NCBI GenBank assembly: GCA_018985225.1
Contig: JADGIF010000042.1
Span: 1-28,809 of the forward strand
Direction: 5' to 3'
From: Amoeboradix gromovi X-113
Taxonomy: Eukaryota > Fungi > Sanchytriomycota
DNA length: 28,809 nt
Under the pieces are notes generated by a model. The model did no database searches. It was given only the letters and a program-made list of their open reading frames with translations, and had not been told where the DNA came from. Position numbers and translations under genes: made by a program. Below, piece by piece: positions 1-28,809 of this stretch. How positions within the stretch are numbered: position 1 is the first letter of the stretch; each line of letters starts with the position of its first letter.

Positions 1-217
1 TGTGGACAGAGATGTGAATGCATGTTGTAATAATCTTCAAGTGATAGATAGTTTGCTAGCGAATGGTGAGAGACCAGGTTGGCAACAAAGGATCACTGAT
101 AAAGTAGTTTCGCCTATTGCCTAGGTGAAGAAATATGGGACACTGCTGTAAAAATTTCAACTGGGTATATCTCGTCACTCGTTTTTCCCCCAGTCTACTT
201 TTTACAGAGCATGTCCC
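1..217 (+). mobile_element. Right portion of a Fanzor-carrying TIR DNA transposon, with right end at TGTCCC (212-217)
   Basis: Terminal GTCTACTTTTTACAGAGCATGTCCC (193-217) matches the family end motif GTCTAnTTTTT-N6-8-TGTCCC also seen at 4520-4542, 5147-5171, 11058-11080 and (minus strand) 15728-15752. Confidence 0.75.
2..124 (+). CDS. 3' end (last 40 aa, 5'-truncated by window edge) of a Fanzor (eukaryotic TnpB-like, probably Fanzor1-type) RNA-guided endonuclease
   Basis: Frame +2 reads VDRDVNACCNNLQVIDSLLANGERPGWQQRITDKVVSPIA* (TAG 122-124). DRDxNAxxN is the RuvC-III motif of TnpB/Fanzor, and a G-x-RP-xxx-R tail is typical of Fanzor1. It is followed by a hairpin and a TIR, and diverged copies occur elsewhere in the window. 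Only 40 aa are visible. Confidence 0.85.
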   Translation: MDRDVNACCNNLQVIDSLLANGERPGWQQRITDKVVSPIA

Positions 218-233
218 ATTGATGTGAAGTTGA
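135..233 (+). ncRNA. Putative Fanzor omegaRNA (scaffold ~135-217, predicted guide from 218, ATTGATGTGAAGTTGA)
   Basis: Long stem-loop starting 10 nt after the Fanzor stop: ATGGGACA 135-142 pairs with TGTCCCAT 212-219, CTGTAAAAA 146-154 with TTTTTACAG 199-207, ACTGGG 160-165 with CCCAGT 189-194. TnpB/Fanzor guide RNAs overlap the element right end and take their guide from flanking DNA. Boundaries are inferred. Confidence 0.6.
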
Positions 234-358
234 TTCATCATTTTACCAAAATATTTCAATGATTCCAAAGCATTTACTACGTCCACTCAACTCCTGAAAG
301 GTCACAGATACCAAGCAGTTATCTCTTCAAGTCATCCGTAAGGTAATAAAGACAATTA

Positions 359-4156: not shown

Positions 4157-4542
4157 GGGACATCAAATATAAAAACTGGACTAACTTTCTGTGACAAATT
4201 GGAACATTATTTTAGCTTTATTAATTTTATGGATTCAAGAGGCGAGTGGACATTCAGCTAGTTGCGGAGTTGACGAGTATAAAAGGAAAATAAATATTCT
4301 GTACAGCTATTCTCTTACTCTTTCATTTAATCTTTATTTCAAATAAAATGCACCTTTTGCTTAGATGCTCAAAGACCTCATATATTTCAACGAGATGCAG
4401 GGTCTTCTAGTTTTATTTTGAAAAGAGGAATACAGTCAATGAAAGAAAATTGGTATAATAGAAGATCTTTTATTAATGATAGCATTTCCTCCGTATGGTA
4501 CACCTTTAAAAACGAGTTAGTCTAGTTTTTATATTGTGTCCC
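4157..4542 (+). mobile_element. 386-bp non-autonomous (MITE-like) member of the Fanzor element family, with TIRs and a 4-bp AAGT target-site duplication
   Basis: Left end GGGACATCAAATATAAAAACTGGACTAAC (4157-4185) versus reverse complement of the right end 4516-4542, GGGACA-CAA-TATAAAAACTAGACTAAC. AAGT at 4153-4156 and 4543-4546. Internal GGTACA (4497-4502) is the hairpin partner of the terminus. The left 34 nt are identical to 28776-28809. Confidence 0.8.
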
Positions 4543-4546
4543 AAGT

Positions 4547-5171
4547 ATATCCAGAATTTTGACGTAAAAACATAGAACGTTAGGCGCCAAACTACCCTCC
4601 TAATTCCCTCTTGCACTAGACTAAGCTGAGAACAATGGGAATGCATACAACTCAAGTATATGACCTCTATGTACTTATAGACAACCACTTTTGACGTCTA
4701 GCAACTCTGATGCATGGGAAGTTCTCGGCTTATTAGATGATCTCTTTTGAGGAAGATATGAATAAACCAATGATATCCTGAAAGTCTTATGCATGGTTCA
4801 GAAATCTATTTTCTAAAGTCTATGTTCATCTTATAGCTCCTGAAGAAAATCACATTCAGTATCTATTTTTGATGTCTCTATATTTGATACATTGTGGTAA
4901 TGGTGATTTGGAGACCTAGTGATGTATAAAAAATGAATATCCAGTTTTTATTAGACTAAAAAAGTCCAAAAAAGAGGATTGCTCGACACATGAATTGTAT
5001 TTAATCAGGGTAAATTATTATTTGATAAGAGTCGACACCTGGAAAGAAATCAAGCTGGTGAAGATTTGTCCAACAAAGTAGAGGTGTTAAATTATGGAAA
5101 TAATACTCGATTAGTATTGCTTCTTGAGACACTAAGCTAAAGGTTTGTCTAGTTTTTGTAGAATGTGTCCC
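4547..5171 (+). mobile_element. Older degenerate element relic ending in a family right end (left boundary uncertain)
   Basis: Right end GTCTAGTTTTTGTAGAATGTGTCCC (5147-5171) is followed by AAGT. Hairpin partner GAGACA at 5126-5131. Additional inverted left-end fragments at 4857-4878 (18/22 match) and 4940-4951 (12/12). Confidence 0.6.
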
Positions 5172-10828: not shown

Positions 10829-11080
10829 TTAAATATTTATTCACAACTACATCGTAGTGCACTCACTGGCGTAAACTAGGACAGATATGTGAACGCGTGT
10901 TACAGCAATCTTCAGGTCTCTGGTTACCAGTATTGAAAGATCTGGGTAGAAAAGAAGAAGAAAGACAAAGAAGTTTTCACCAAGGCATATGTGGTATGAT
11001 ACGGGAACTGTTTGCTTGAGTAGATCAACGTTTTGAGAAATTGGTTTTAAAACATTTGTCTAGTTTTTGTGGAGTGTCCC
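10829..11080 (+). pseudogene. Degenerate Fanzor C-terminal fragment plus omegaRNA-like region and right end (left boundary uncertain)
   Basis: 10879-10917 versus 4-42: 31/39 identical nt. Translates LNIYSQLHRSALTGVN*DRYVNACYSNLQV (in-frame stop; RuvC-III DRD changed to DRY). TACGGGAACTG at 11000-11010 resembles TATGGGACACTG. Terminus GTCTAGTTTTTGTGGAGTGTCCC at 11058-11080. Confidence 0.8.
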
Positions 11081-12640
11081 ATGTCCCCAGCAATTACTTT
11101 ACTTCAGAAATCATTGTACAGATCGAGACCACCAATATGCTGTATTCTAGGGCACGTAGACCATGGTAAGTCAACCTTGATGGATTACTTAAAAAAGCAT
11201 GAAATCTCAAATAAAATTACTGAAAACGAATTTGGAGGAATTACTCAACATGTCGGATCTTTTGAAGTAAATTTAAAATCTTCAAAAGATAGGATCACAT
11301 TTCTAGATCTTCCTGGTCATTCAGCCTTTGAGGAAATGAGAAGTCGCGGTGCTAAGGGTGCAGATATTGGGATTCTGGTAATCGCTGCTGACGATGGATT
11401 TAAGGAGCAGTCTAGAAAAGCACTGGAGCATATAAGAAACTCAAATCTGCCTTTTATAGTTGCTTTGAATAAAGTTGATAAGCAAGGTTGCAATATCGCC
11501 AAAGTCAAGAGGCAACTTGTAGATAATGGTATAGAGCTTGAGGATTTTGGCGGCGACGTTCCATGCGTTGAAATAAGTGCCTTAAAAGGCACAAACATAC
11601 AACTTTTGGAAGAAAACATAATTGCATTAGCTGAACTACTAGAACTCAAAGAAGAGAAAAAATCATTTGAGGCTCTTGTTGTCGAATCTAAGATTAAAAA
11701 AGGTGTTGGTGCTGTTGCTACTTTGATTCCATTATCTGGAACCTTGAAAAAAGGAAACATCCTCTTTTGCTCCCAAAAGCTTTCTGAAAATCCCATTATC
11801 GGCAAGGTTCGGTCCATCGTTGGATTTTCTGGCAATTCTTTGGTATGTGCCGTTCCTTGTACCCCTGTTGAAGTAAGTGGTTGGAGAAGCCTTCCACCAG
11901 TTGGATCTAAAGTTGTGCATGTGAAGAGCGAGTCTCAGGCTAAGAAACTGTTCAAAGCTCTACAAGATCCTACAGTAATATCGGGTCCAACTGTTTCTGT
12001 TGATAAGAATGGTTGGATACAGATTCCTGTGATTCTGCGTTGCGATGTCGCTGGATCATTGGAAGCCGTTATAAATATGGTACATAAGCTTCCGCTATAT
12101 AGATATAAGGCCAATTGCAATATCGTCTCGGCCGAAGTGGGCGAAATTACCCAAAACGAGGTCAATTTAAGTAAGGAACTAAATGGTGCGTTATTAGGAT
12201 TTAATGTTCGCAAACCTTTGGCTCATTCTGATAACATATTCTCGTCCAATATAATTTATGATCTGGAGAACCAATTTAAGGAATGGATAATTAAAAACAA
12301 GTTACCGCTGCAAAAGAGAGAAACCGAAGTTGGAGTTGCCAAAGTGCTGCAATTATTCGATTACAATAAAAACCAGCCTAGCCAAAAGCGAATACTGGGG
12401 TCTGAAATCAAGCAAGGTTTAGCTAAATGCAAATCACAGGTCCAAGTGTTTAGAAATGACAAATTAGTCCTTACAGGTATACTCGATGAGTTGAAGCACC
12501 ACAAAAAAGTCATAGATAAAATTGAATCAGGCAAGCAATGCGGAATATCCCTCTCAGACTGCGACATACATGATGTCAGAGTAAACGACGAGCTACGAAT
12601 AATAGAAGTAGCGTTGATACCTGCAAATTTAAGTAAATGA
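11081..12640 (+). CDS. IFM1: Translation initiation factor IF-2, mitochondrial type, 519 aa
   Basis: RPPICCILGHVDHGKSTL, GGITQHVGSF, FLDLPGHSAFEEMRSRGA, NKVD, CDVAGSLEA, LKHHKK. The first ATG is at 11081; the GTG at 11069 lies inside the TIR. Confidence 0.92.
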   Translation: MSPAITLLQKSLYRSRPPICCILGHVDHGKSTLMDYLKKHEISNKITENEFGGITQHVGSFEVNLKSSKDRITFLDLPGHSAFEEMRSRGAKGADIGILVIAADDGFKEQSRKALEHIRNSNLPFIVALNKVDKQGCNIAKVKRQLVDNGIELEDFGGDVPCVEISALKGTNIQLLEENIIALAELLELKEEKKSFEALVVESKIKKGVGAVATLIPLSGTLKKGNILFCSQKLSENPIIGKVRSIVGFSGNSLVCAVPCTPVEVSGWRSLPPVGSKVVHVKSESQAKKLFKALQDPTVISGPTVSVDKNGWIQIPVILRCDVAGSLEAVINMVHKLPLYRYKANCNIVSAEVGEITQNEVNLSKELNGALLGFNVRKPLAHSDNIFSSNIIYDLENQFKEWIIKNKLPLQKRETEVGVAKVLQLFDYNKNQPSQKRILGSEIKQGLAKCKSQVQVFRNDKLVLTGILDELKHHKKVIDKIESGKQCGISLSDCDIHDVRVNDELRIIEVALIPANLSK

Positions 12641-15727: not shown

Positions 15728-16010
15728 GGGACAAAGAATGTAAAAATTAGACGATAATATGTCCCGTATTTTGTCATCTAGAGATTAGTGAAGAGCTCTA
15801 ATATCAAAGCATCTCTGCCGGCTATATATCTCACTGTTTTCCAAGGACATTCGTCGAACTGAAGATTGGTTTGTTATCTTTACAGCTTTTGGATGAGAGC
15901 GCGTATCAAACTTTTTGTTTTCATGCAATATTAAATAGATGTAGTCCAGATGTTTATTGCAACTGTAGCCAAATTTGCACAGATTCAGCGTTGTCCACTG
16001 TACTCGTCAT
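15728..16010 (-). pseudogene. Degenerate Fanzor element on the minus strand with an internally deleted (38-nt) terminal hairpin
   Basis: Minus strand 15781-15760 matches 121-142 at 18/22 nt, and 15752-15725 matches 193-220 at 22/28 nt. AATCTTCA (NLQ) at 15867-15860. Upstream DDEYSGQR*ICAN (~16011-15973) resembles the Fanzor DEYxTSxxCxxC motif. Confidence 0.75.
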
Positions 16011-28775: not shown

Positions 28776-28809
28776 GGGACATCAAATATAAAAACTGGAC
28801 TAACTTTCT
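28776..28809 (+). mobile_element. Left end of another family member (runs off the window)
   Basis: GGGACATCAAATATAAAAACTGGACTAACTTTCT is 34/34 identical to 4157-4190. The match starts exactly at GGG and is preceded by TAC-ACTC. Confidence 0.85.

Follow-up and report, generated by a model that had tools for sequence, protein, structure and literature searches.

The first 217 nucleotides of the window (the whole 28,809-nt stretch analysed here, from contig JADGIF010000042.1 of Amoeboradix gromovi X-113) are the right end of a young TIR transposon that is present in about 100 copies in this genome. We assign a probability of about 80% to the reading that this is the right end of a non-autonomous cut-and-paste Fanzor1 transposon with an omegaRNA-type module, with Fanzor1 cutting empty sites, repair restoring the element and the transposase acting in trans. 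Table 1 lists the features on which this reading is built.

Table 1. Features at the right end of the element, in window coordinates.
Feature	Position	Strand	Remarks
Fanzor1 ORF C-terminus, last 40 codons and stop (RuvC-III helix, C-terminal tail)	2..124	+	gene runs off the contig start
RuvC-III catalytic Asp codon (D of RD)	11..13	+	invariant column in alignments A1 and A3
SL1, 7-bp hairpin (TCGCCTA / TAGGTGA, one G.U)	110..128	+	over the last codons and stop; predicted omegaRNA 5' part
8-nt linker	129..136	+	ends in ATAT, which resembles the ANNT target site and can base-pair with the TSD
SL2, long stem-loop	137..217	+	5' arm is the inner inverted TIR copy, 3' arm the right TIR
Right TIR	193..217	-	starts GGGACATGCTCT; 239 genome-wide matches at <=2 mismatches (control 0), which may take in sister families
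Right half of the 4-bp TSD	218..221	+	ATTG in the window copy; family consensus ANNT
Predicted ~15-nt guide	222..236	+	by analogy; 218-232 should the guide include the TSD

A search of the element's own genome (10.55 Mb, 1,319 contigs) returned 96 candidate copies; the 40 of them that were scored are 88–96% identical, and all 40 end at positions 218–220. In 32 copies the sequences agree through TGTCCC (212–217) and diverge beyond it, apart from an ANNT bias in the right flank, where position +1 is A in 32/32 copies and position +4 is T in 23/32; beyond this motif, 16/32 have G at +5. The boundary across these copies confirms the terminus that the preliminary description had proposed. The same TIR motif forms the left end, which was placed in 15 contigs, 104 nt upstream of position 1 of the 529-nt sister contig L037 and 186 nt 5' of the start codon, and the earlier view that the inner arm of the hairpin is an inverted TIR copy has held. 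Two TIRs, a sharp edge, an ANNT flank and about 100 copies describe a eukaryotic transposon with defined ends, as applies to Fanzor1 elements. The A. gromovi genome of 10.5 Mbp was assembled from 100-bp reads after whole-genome amplification (10.1101/2020.11.19.389700), and this origin accounts for the contig breaks within the repeat; the sequencing data matching the family are a single DNA run.

Frame +2, from which the preliminary description had started, indeed reads VDRDVNACCNNLQVIDSLLANGERPGWQQR...PIA* with its stop codon at 122–124, and the catalytic Asp is D in 8/8 sister copies spanning that codon. The frame is extended by sister copies L008 and L022, with CTHC ahead of DRDVNA, and by L037, in which YYGDGS, PEFRTSKLCYSC and the second pair of cysteines can also be read. 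The resulting CxxC..CxxC..RD layout in these three contigs places the RuvC-III RD after a C4 zinc finger, as in Fanzor proteins, and in L037, outside the window copy, the RuvC-II glutamate lies six residues ahead of this zinc finger (E-FRTSKL-CYSC), with RD next. Such a rearranged glutamate (Ealt), six residues before the zinc finger, is a Fanzor signature (PMC10711439). PF07282 was matched above cut-off, and the YYGDGS..DSLL stretch of L037 is 66% identical across 95 aa to the 606-aa relative P0002. Among 1.84 billion proteins searched, the closest relatives measure 580–685 aa, and all full-length ones have the RuvC-I motif DPG, the glutamate, the C4 finger and RD; L037, a deleted form, is without DPG. 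A RuvC-I stretch tied to the exact window family was found neither by protein search nor among the contigs, P0159 having been discarded as its source because it belongs to a sister family, and the assembly holds no intact full-length copy of the window family.

The assignment to Fanzor1 comes from these relatives. A broad profile matched SpuFz1, GtFz1 and PpFz1 at E values of 1e-59 to 1e-41 (SpuFz1 1.5e-59) and Fanzor2 at 3.4e-11; a narrow profile made of the 12 closest relatives alone matched SpuFz1 weakly (E 1.2e-4), and a single-sequence PDB search gave no significant match. The AlphaFold model of relative P0152 (pLDDT 87.7), which is 60% identical over the shared C-terminus, has SpuFz1, PpFz1 and GtFz1 as its top folds (SpuFz1 E 5e-16, TM 0.62; Fanzor2 TM 0.26), and with about 600 aa and a REC/WED/RuvC arrangement it stands nearer to Fz1 than to Fz2. 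As the full-length relatives have DPG and a predicted fold like that of SpuFz1, we class the family as a divergent Fanzor1 clade. The Fanzor1-like identity given in the preliminary description is thereby upheld by homology, fold and copy boundaries; of the domains it had named for HMM and structure searches, the RuvC-II glutamate and the zinc finger were located in sister copy L037, and RuvC-I could not be tied to the family. One of the relatives found by HMMER, P0006, is an A. gromovi protein in EukProt and matches contig C363 at 100% identity. A related family has intact Fanzor1 genes at C363:1463-3517 (minus strand; 685 aa, P0006) and, as a 72% identical copy, at C1184:3683-5722 (plus strand); these two genes are better experimental starting points than the window fragment.

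Ten nucleotides past the stop codon, the three-segment stem-loop that the preliminary description placed at 135–219 was recovered at -29.3 kcal/mol (z -6.56, reached by 0/200 shuffles). The reverse strand of 137–217 folds as well (-31.9, z -6.04), and since both strands fold equally, the z-score of SL2 reflects the inverted repeat and not an RNA, so that the big hairpin, taken alone, is weak evidence for RNA. SL1 had been overlooked, and the scaffold of 81–85 nt put forward at that stage did not stand; with SL1 included, a scaffold of about 108–112 nt, TSD included, is predicted. SL1 folds with a z of -3.34, and 30/30 copies have the same stem. The hairpin recurs in six relatives from other samples, where it always opens with TCGC and closes with GTGA, including a G.U pair, and is followed by 8 nt and a TIR-like stem reaching the element end; in 7/7 elements the linker has exactly 8 nt, its positions -4 and -1 being A and T. 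The inner pairs of SL1 vary on both arms across the relatives (C-G/T-A/T-G; T-A/G-C/A-T/C-G), and pairs 5–6 are paired in 12/12 cases when the arms are cognate and in 37/60 when they are swapped. A result as good arises in 6 of 720 permutations, which for six hand-anchored and related sequences does not amount to formal covariation. We take these compensatory changes across families as good, though not formal, evidence that the SL1 stem is conserved by covariation. Protein constraint does not explain SL1, as its motif sits in two different codon phases among the relatives, and its constant G.U can pair on the plus strand only. For the long stem (SL2), the covariation across copies that the preliminary description had anticipated was not seen within the family, where copies are 93% alike and offer little power.

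Three Fanzor1 structures share a 7-bp SL1, with the region past SL1 varying freely (PMC11423790); the right end described here has, in silico, the same order of an approximately 7-bp SL1 and an SL2 before the guide. An Rfam search yielded only a sub-threshold snoRNA match. Across relatives, the distance from the SL1 start to the terminus ranges from about 45 to 108 nt. The shortest span, 45 nt, was noted for an intact 608-aa Fanzor1 relative (P0151, L117:1918-1962, ENA ERZ27315200), whose end comprises an SL1 of 8 bp, an 8-nt linker and a 7-bp stem; the span in relative L112 is about 60 nt. If the terminus call is right, the P0151 scaffold would be more compact than any Fanzor1 scaffold described so far. 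With SL1, linker and SL2, the window copy by its sequence holds a complete RNA module.

By pointing to the intact Asp, the preliminary description implied a working nuclease, a view that we cannot share, because many copies are without RuvC-I and no more than the final 217 bases of the element lie in the window. L037 aligns with full-length relatives only from residue ~57 onward, and several contigs match L037 only up to base 173, among them C709, which continues in a 256-aa open frame matching residues 1–217 of P0002. When the source run was mapped on L037, loose ends appeared on both sides of 173–175, with in-frame continuation into Fanzor-like sequence. From these ends, continuing in frame on both sides, we read L037 as an in-frame internal deletion at a 3-nt microhomology, which fuses codons 1–30 to the final ~140 codons, with loss of WED/REC and RuvC-I. 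Of the contigs that span the joint, six carry the deletion and three or four do not; the deleted element measures ~0.79 kb. What remains at L037:83-529 is an open frame of about 170 aa, a mini-Fanzor with a basic N-terminus, RuvC-II, zinc finger and RuvC-III; by chance alone, a third of all deletions would keep the frame. The odds that the window copy itself has a whole nuclease gene are roughly even or worse, and if deleted it would, by analogy, be a ‘ghost’ donating a guide only.

These deletions lend substance to the most serious alternative, namely that the family is Fanzor1-derived with a dead RNA-guided arm, its members being MITE-like passengers of a transposase that needs only the TIRs and its hairpins mere leftovers. 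At least four deletion forms exist in the family, including C644, a form with the 5' leader joined to base 195, and C1227/L038, from which SL1 and the inner arm are missing; one copy has a stop codon in the tail, and the lack of a full-length copy in the assembly points the same way. We nevertheless consider this unlikely: the SL1 stem has been kept in every copy scored, the undeleted form is present in the reads with frames open on both sides of the joint, the missing full-length copy is accounted for by collapse of near-identical repeats, and the genome has the intact Fanzor1 genes of the related family on C363 and C1184.

Far less probable, and largely refuted, is the view that the 81-bp hairpin (137–217) is a miniature TIR element in its own right, which inserted behind a Fanzor gene and folds only through the complementarity of its two TIRs. 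It does carry GGGACA and TGTCCC at its ends, is preceded by the ANNT-like ATAT and folds on both strands, and a 38-bp GGGAC..GTCCC terminal hairpin, a unit of comparable build, occurs at window 15728–15765. Yet the left neighbour of the hairpin is constant (ATAT) in 32 copies in which the right flank varies, and hence the 81-bp unit does not move alone; moreover, the element's actual left TIR is located 5' of the start codon, and the layout of SL1, 8 nt and stem recurs in the six relatives from other samples. Such an insertion could be the ancient origin of the inner arm.

Returning to the Fanzor1 transposon with an omegaRNA-type module, the question is where its guide would begin. Fanzor1 RNAs are reported to include the TSD in the scaffold and to end ~15 nt beyond it (PMC10711439); Spu-1 has a guide of 14–15 nt and a CATA TAM composed of a conserved upstream CA and the TA duplication (PMC10432273, PMC3627910). 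By analogy with both, the TSD at 218–221 probably belongs to the RNA scaffold and the guide more likely starts at 222 than at 218. The flank-derived guide of the preliminary description is therefore supported in kind, by homology, fold and copy boundaries, but its start is more likely to lie past the 4-nt TSD. Left ends of a sister MITE family, whose TIRs are related, have C at -5, just ahead of the duplication, in 13/13 cases, and right ends in 4/16 (p 6e-5). Three of four full-length relatives have AC there as well; these left-flank counts refer to the sister family and the relatives, not to the window family. From this imprint we predict a TAM near (A)C-ANNT. Part of the flank bias may be a palindromic preference of the transposase, as right flanks in the window family have G at +5 in half of the 32 copies. 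Derivation of the guide from the ORF of an older relative was rejected (alignment score 48 versus a shuffled mean of 46.8).

The element ends are Sola-like. Exact 4-bp TSDs flank relatives L112 and L115; in the sister MITEs the TSD is exact in 4/9, compared with 4% of cross pairs, and matches at >=3/4 positions in 7/9. AWWT-type duplications are a Sola hallmark (PMC3845634, PMC3627910) and Sola2-Fanzor1 chimeras are known (PMC3627910); a 4-bp duplication of this type next to TIRs is what we find, with ANNT flanks and exact TSDs. No transposase was found between the TIRs, either within the element or in full-length relatives. DUF7869 has 28 matches over cut-off in the genome, in open frames of up to 687 aa; three of them have a TIR that faces inward within 4 kb, where a hand estimate predicts about one, and the excess is not significant. 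DUF7869 ORFs on C367, C567 and C781, 1.8–3.5 kb from an inward-facing perfect TIR of the window family, are candidate autonomous partners. TIRs with 4-bp TSDs also argue against the least probable alternative, that the ORF is a Fanzor2 or IS607-type TnpB or stems from a bacterial contaminant: although the tail motif and PF07282 are common to all TnpB kin, PF07282 has 560 candidates in this genome and the narrow profile scores TnpB-like chains about equal to SpuFz1, the length of ~600–680 aa, the GDGS motif, the broad profile and the fold all speak for Fanzor1, the neighbouring genes are eukaryotic housekeeping genes, and pattern scans of prokaryotic genomes and viral contigs brought up no relative.

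TnpB-type nucleases restore their element by cutting the empty site. Applied to the Fanzor1 transposon, the cycle would run as follows. A transposase encoded elsewhere in the genome, probably of Sola type, would excise and reinsert the element in trans, and a transcript over ~110–236 would be trimmed to an omegaRNA with a scaffold of ~108–112 nt and a flank guide of ~15 nt. Full-length Fanzor1 from undeleted copies would bind this RNA and cut the empty site after excision; repair from the occupied chromatid would then restore the element, so that a cut-and-paste element gains copies. The occupied site would escape cutting, since CC-ANNT stands ahead of its guide match, the predicted TAM being about (A)C-ANNT followed by the flank. 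Deleted copies would supply guides only, like the ghosts of Spu-1. For expression, binding, cleavage and restoration we infer the course of events from work on TnpB and Fanzor; the anatomy was read from the sequences themselves. The restoration idea has been raised for Fanzor in the discussion of PMC10432273.

A more far-reaching version, to which we give a good deal less than an even chance, holds that this is an undescribed and active Fanzor1 clade with Sola-type ends, in which the ~100 right ends in the 10.5-Mb genome of this tiny fungus, a parasite of algae, act as a library of guides that serves a few full-length genes, the one-sided (A)C-ANNT imprint is the TAM, and scaffolds of relatives go down to ~45 nt. 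If it were true, the imprint would be a direct sign that Fanzor selects which insertions persist, and the ~45-nt scaffolds would fall below the smallest described Fanzor1 scaffold. In eukaryotes, the role of Fanzor1 for its transposon is argued by analogy with TnpB. About 100 near-identical insertions with differing flanks, in deleted and undeleted forms, together with the bias in left flanks, would offer a test bed for the restoration model and the TAM, and the clade provides candidates for compact editors, with intact relatives of 606–673 aa, readable ends and one predicted 45-nt scaffold.

Remnants of related elements are scattered over the window and the genome. Directly behind the right end and upstream of a ubiquitin hydrolase gene, 363–507 holds an older, decayed Fanzor tail (72% to 33–85) with a degenerate right end. 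Window 4157–4542 is a 386-bp GGGAC...GTCCC MITE with an exact AAGT duplication and a frame (CTFC..QRDAG) resembling a divergent Fanzor tail; it has many copies in other examined loci and a further left end at 28776. Lone right ends of related elements were also seen at 5147–5171, 10879–11087 and 15728–15765, one of them 26 nt ahead of a TBC-like ORF and one with a DRYVNAC tail against an IF2-like ORF and a double terminus (11080/11087). That right ends lie just ahead of host start codons as a rule was not confirmed, as only 4/26 scored copies do so within 60 nt in sense. At L002:359-430, a tRNA-like sequence adjoins a decayed Fanzor 5' fragment split by a MITE. The 560 candidates for PF07282 (the TnpB/Fanzor zinc finger), of which 150 were scored, all over cut-off and mostly as short broken frames, represent a separate, very abundant TnpB-like family, in which C542 has an open frame of 672 aa. 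Pattern scans through collections of metagenome, viral and prokaryotic sequences contributed no further loci.

The architecture is already known from Spu-1/SpuFz1 of Spizellomyces punctatus (PMC3627910, PMC10432273, PMC11423790), and the host group is one for which a literature search found no report linking Fanzor or transposons to sanchytrids. As in Spu-1, a single Fanzor1 ORF lies between TIRs of ~30 nt with no transposase inside, deleted ‘ghost’ copies retain the right-end RNA, a 7-bp SL1 is followed by one SL2 on the right TIR, and a conserved motif stands just upstream of the left end. Unlike Spu-1 with its TA duplication, the A. gromovi family has a 4-bp ANNT TSD and GGGAC ends; its predicted TAM is (A)C-ANNT instead of CATA, its predicted scaffold has ~108–112 nt where that of Spu-1 has 75, SL1 reaches back into the end of the ORF, and the host belongs to Sanchytriomycota. 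SpuFz1 and relative P0152 share only ~12–13% identity in the structural alignment. The Fanzor1 elements of SfAV and other lepidopteran viruses (PMC10711439) are viral, occur in two copies and have a three-stem RNA, a TTAN TSD and a 13-bp TIR. The Sola2-Fanzor1 elements DFa-1,2,3 and PPa-1,4,5 of dictyostelids (PMC3627910) likewise combine Fanzor1 with TIRs and an AWWT-type TSD of 4 bp; these are several-kb elements with TIRs of 12–21 bp and Sola2 transposase sequence, whereas the A. gromovi element of ~2 kb carries only Fanzor between TIRs of ~25–30 bp, and its link to a Sola transposase is putative.
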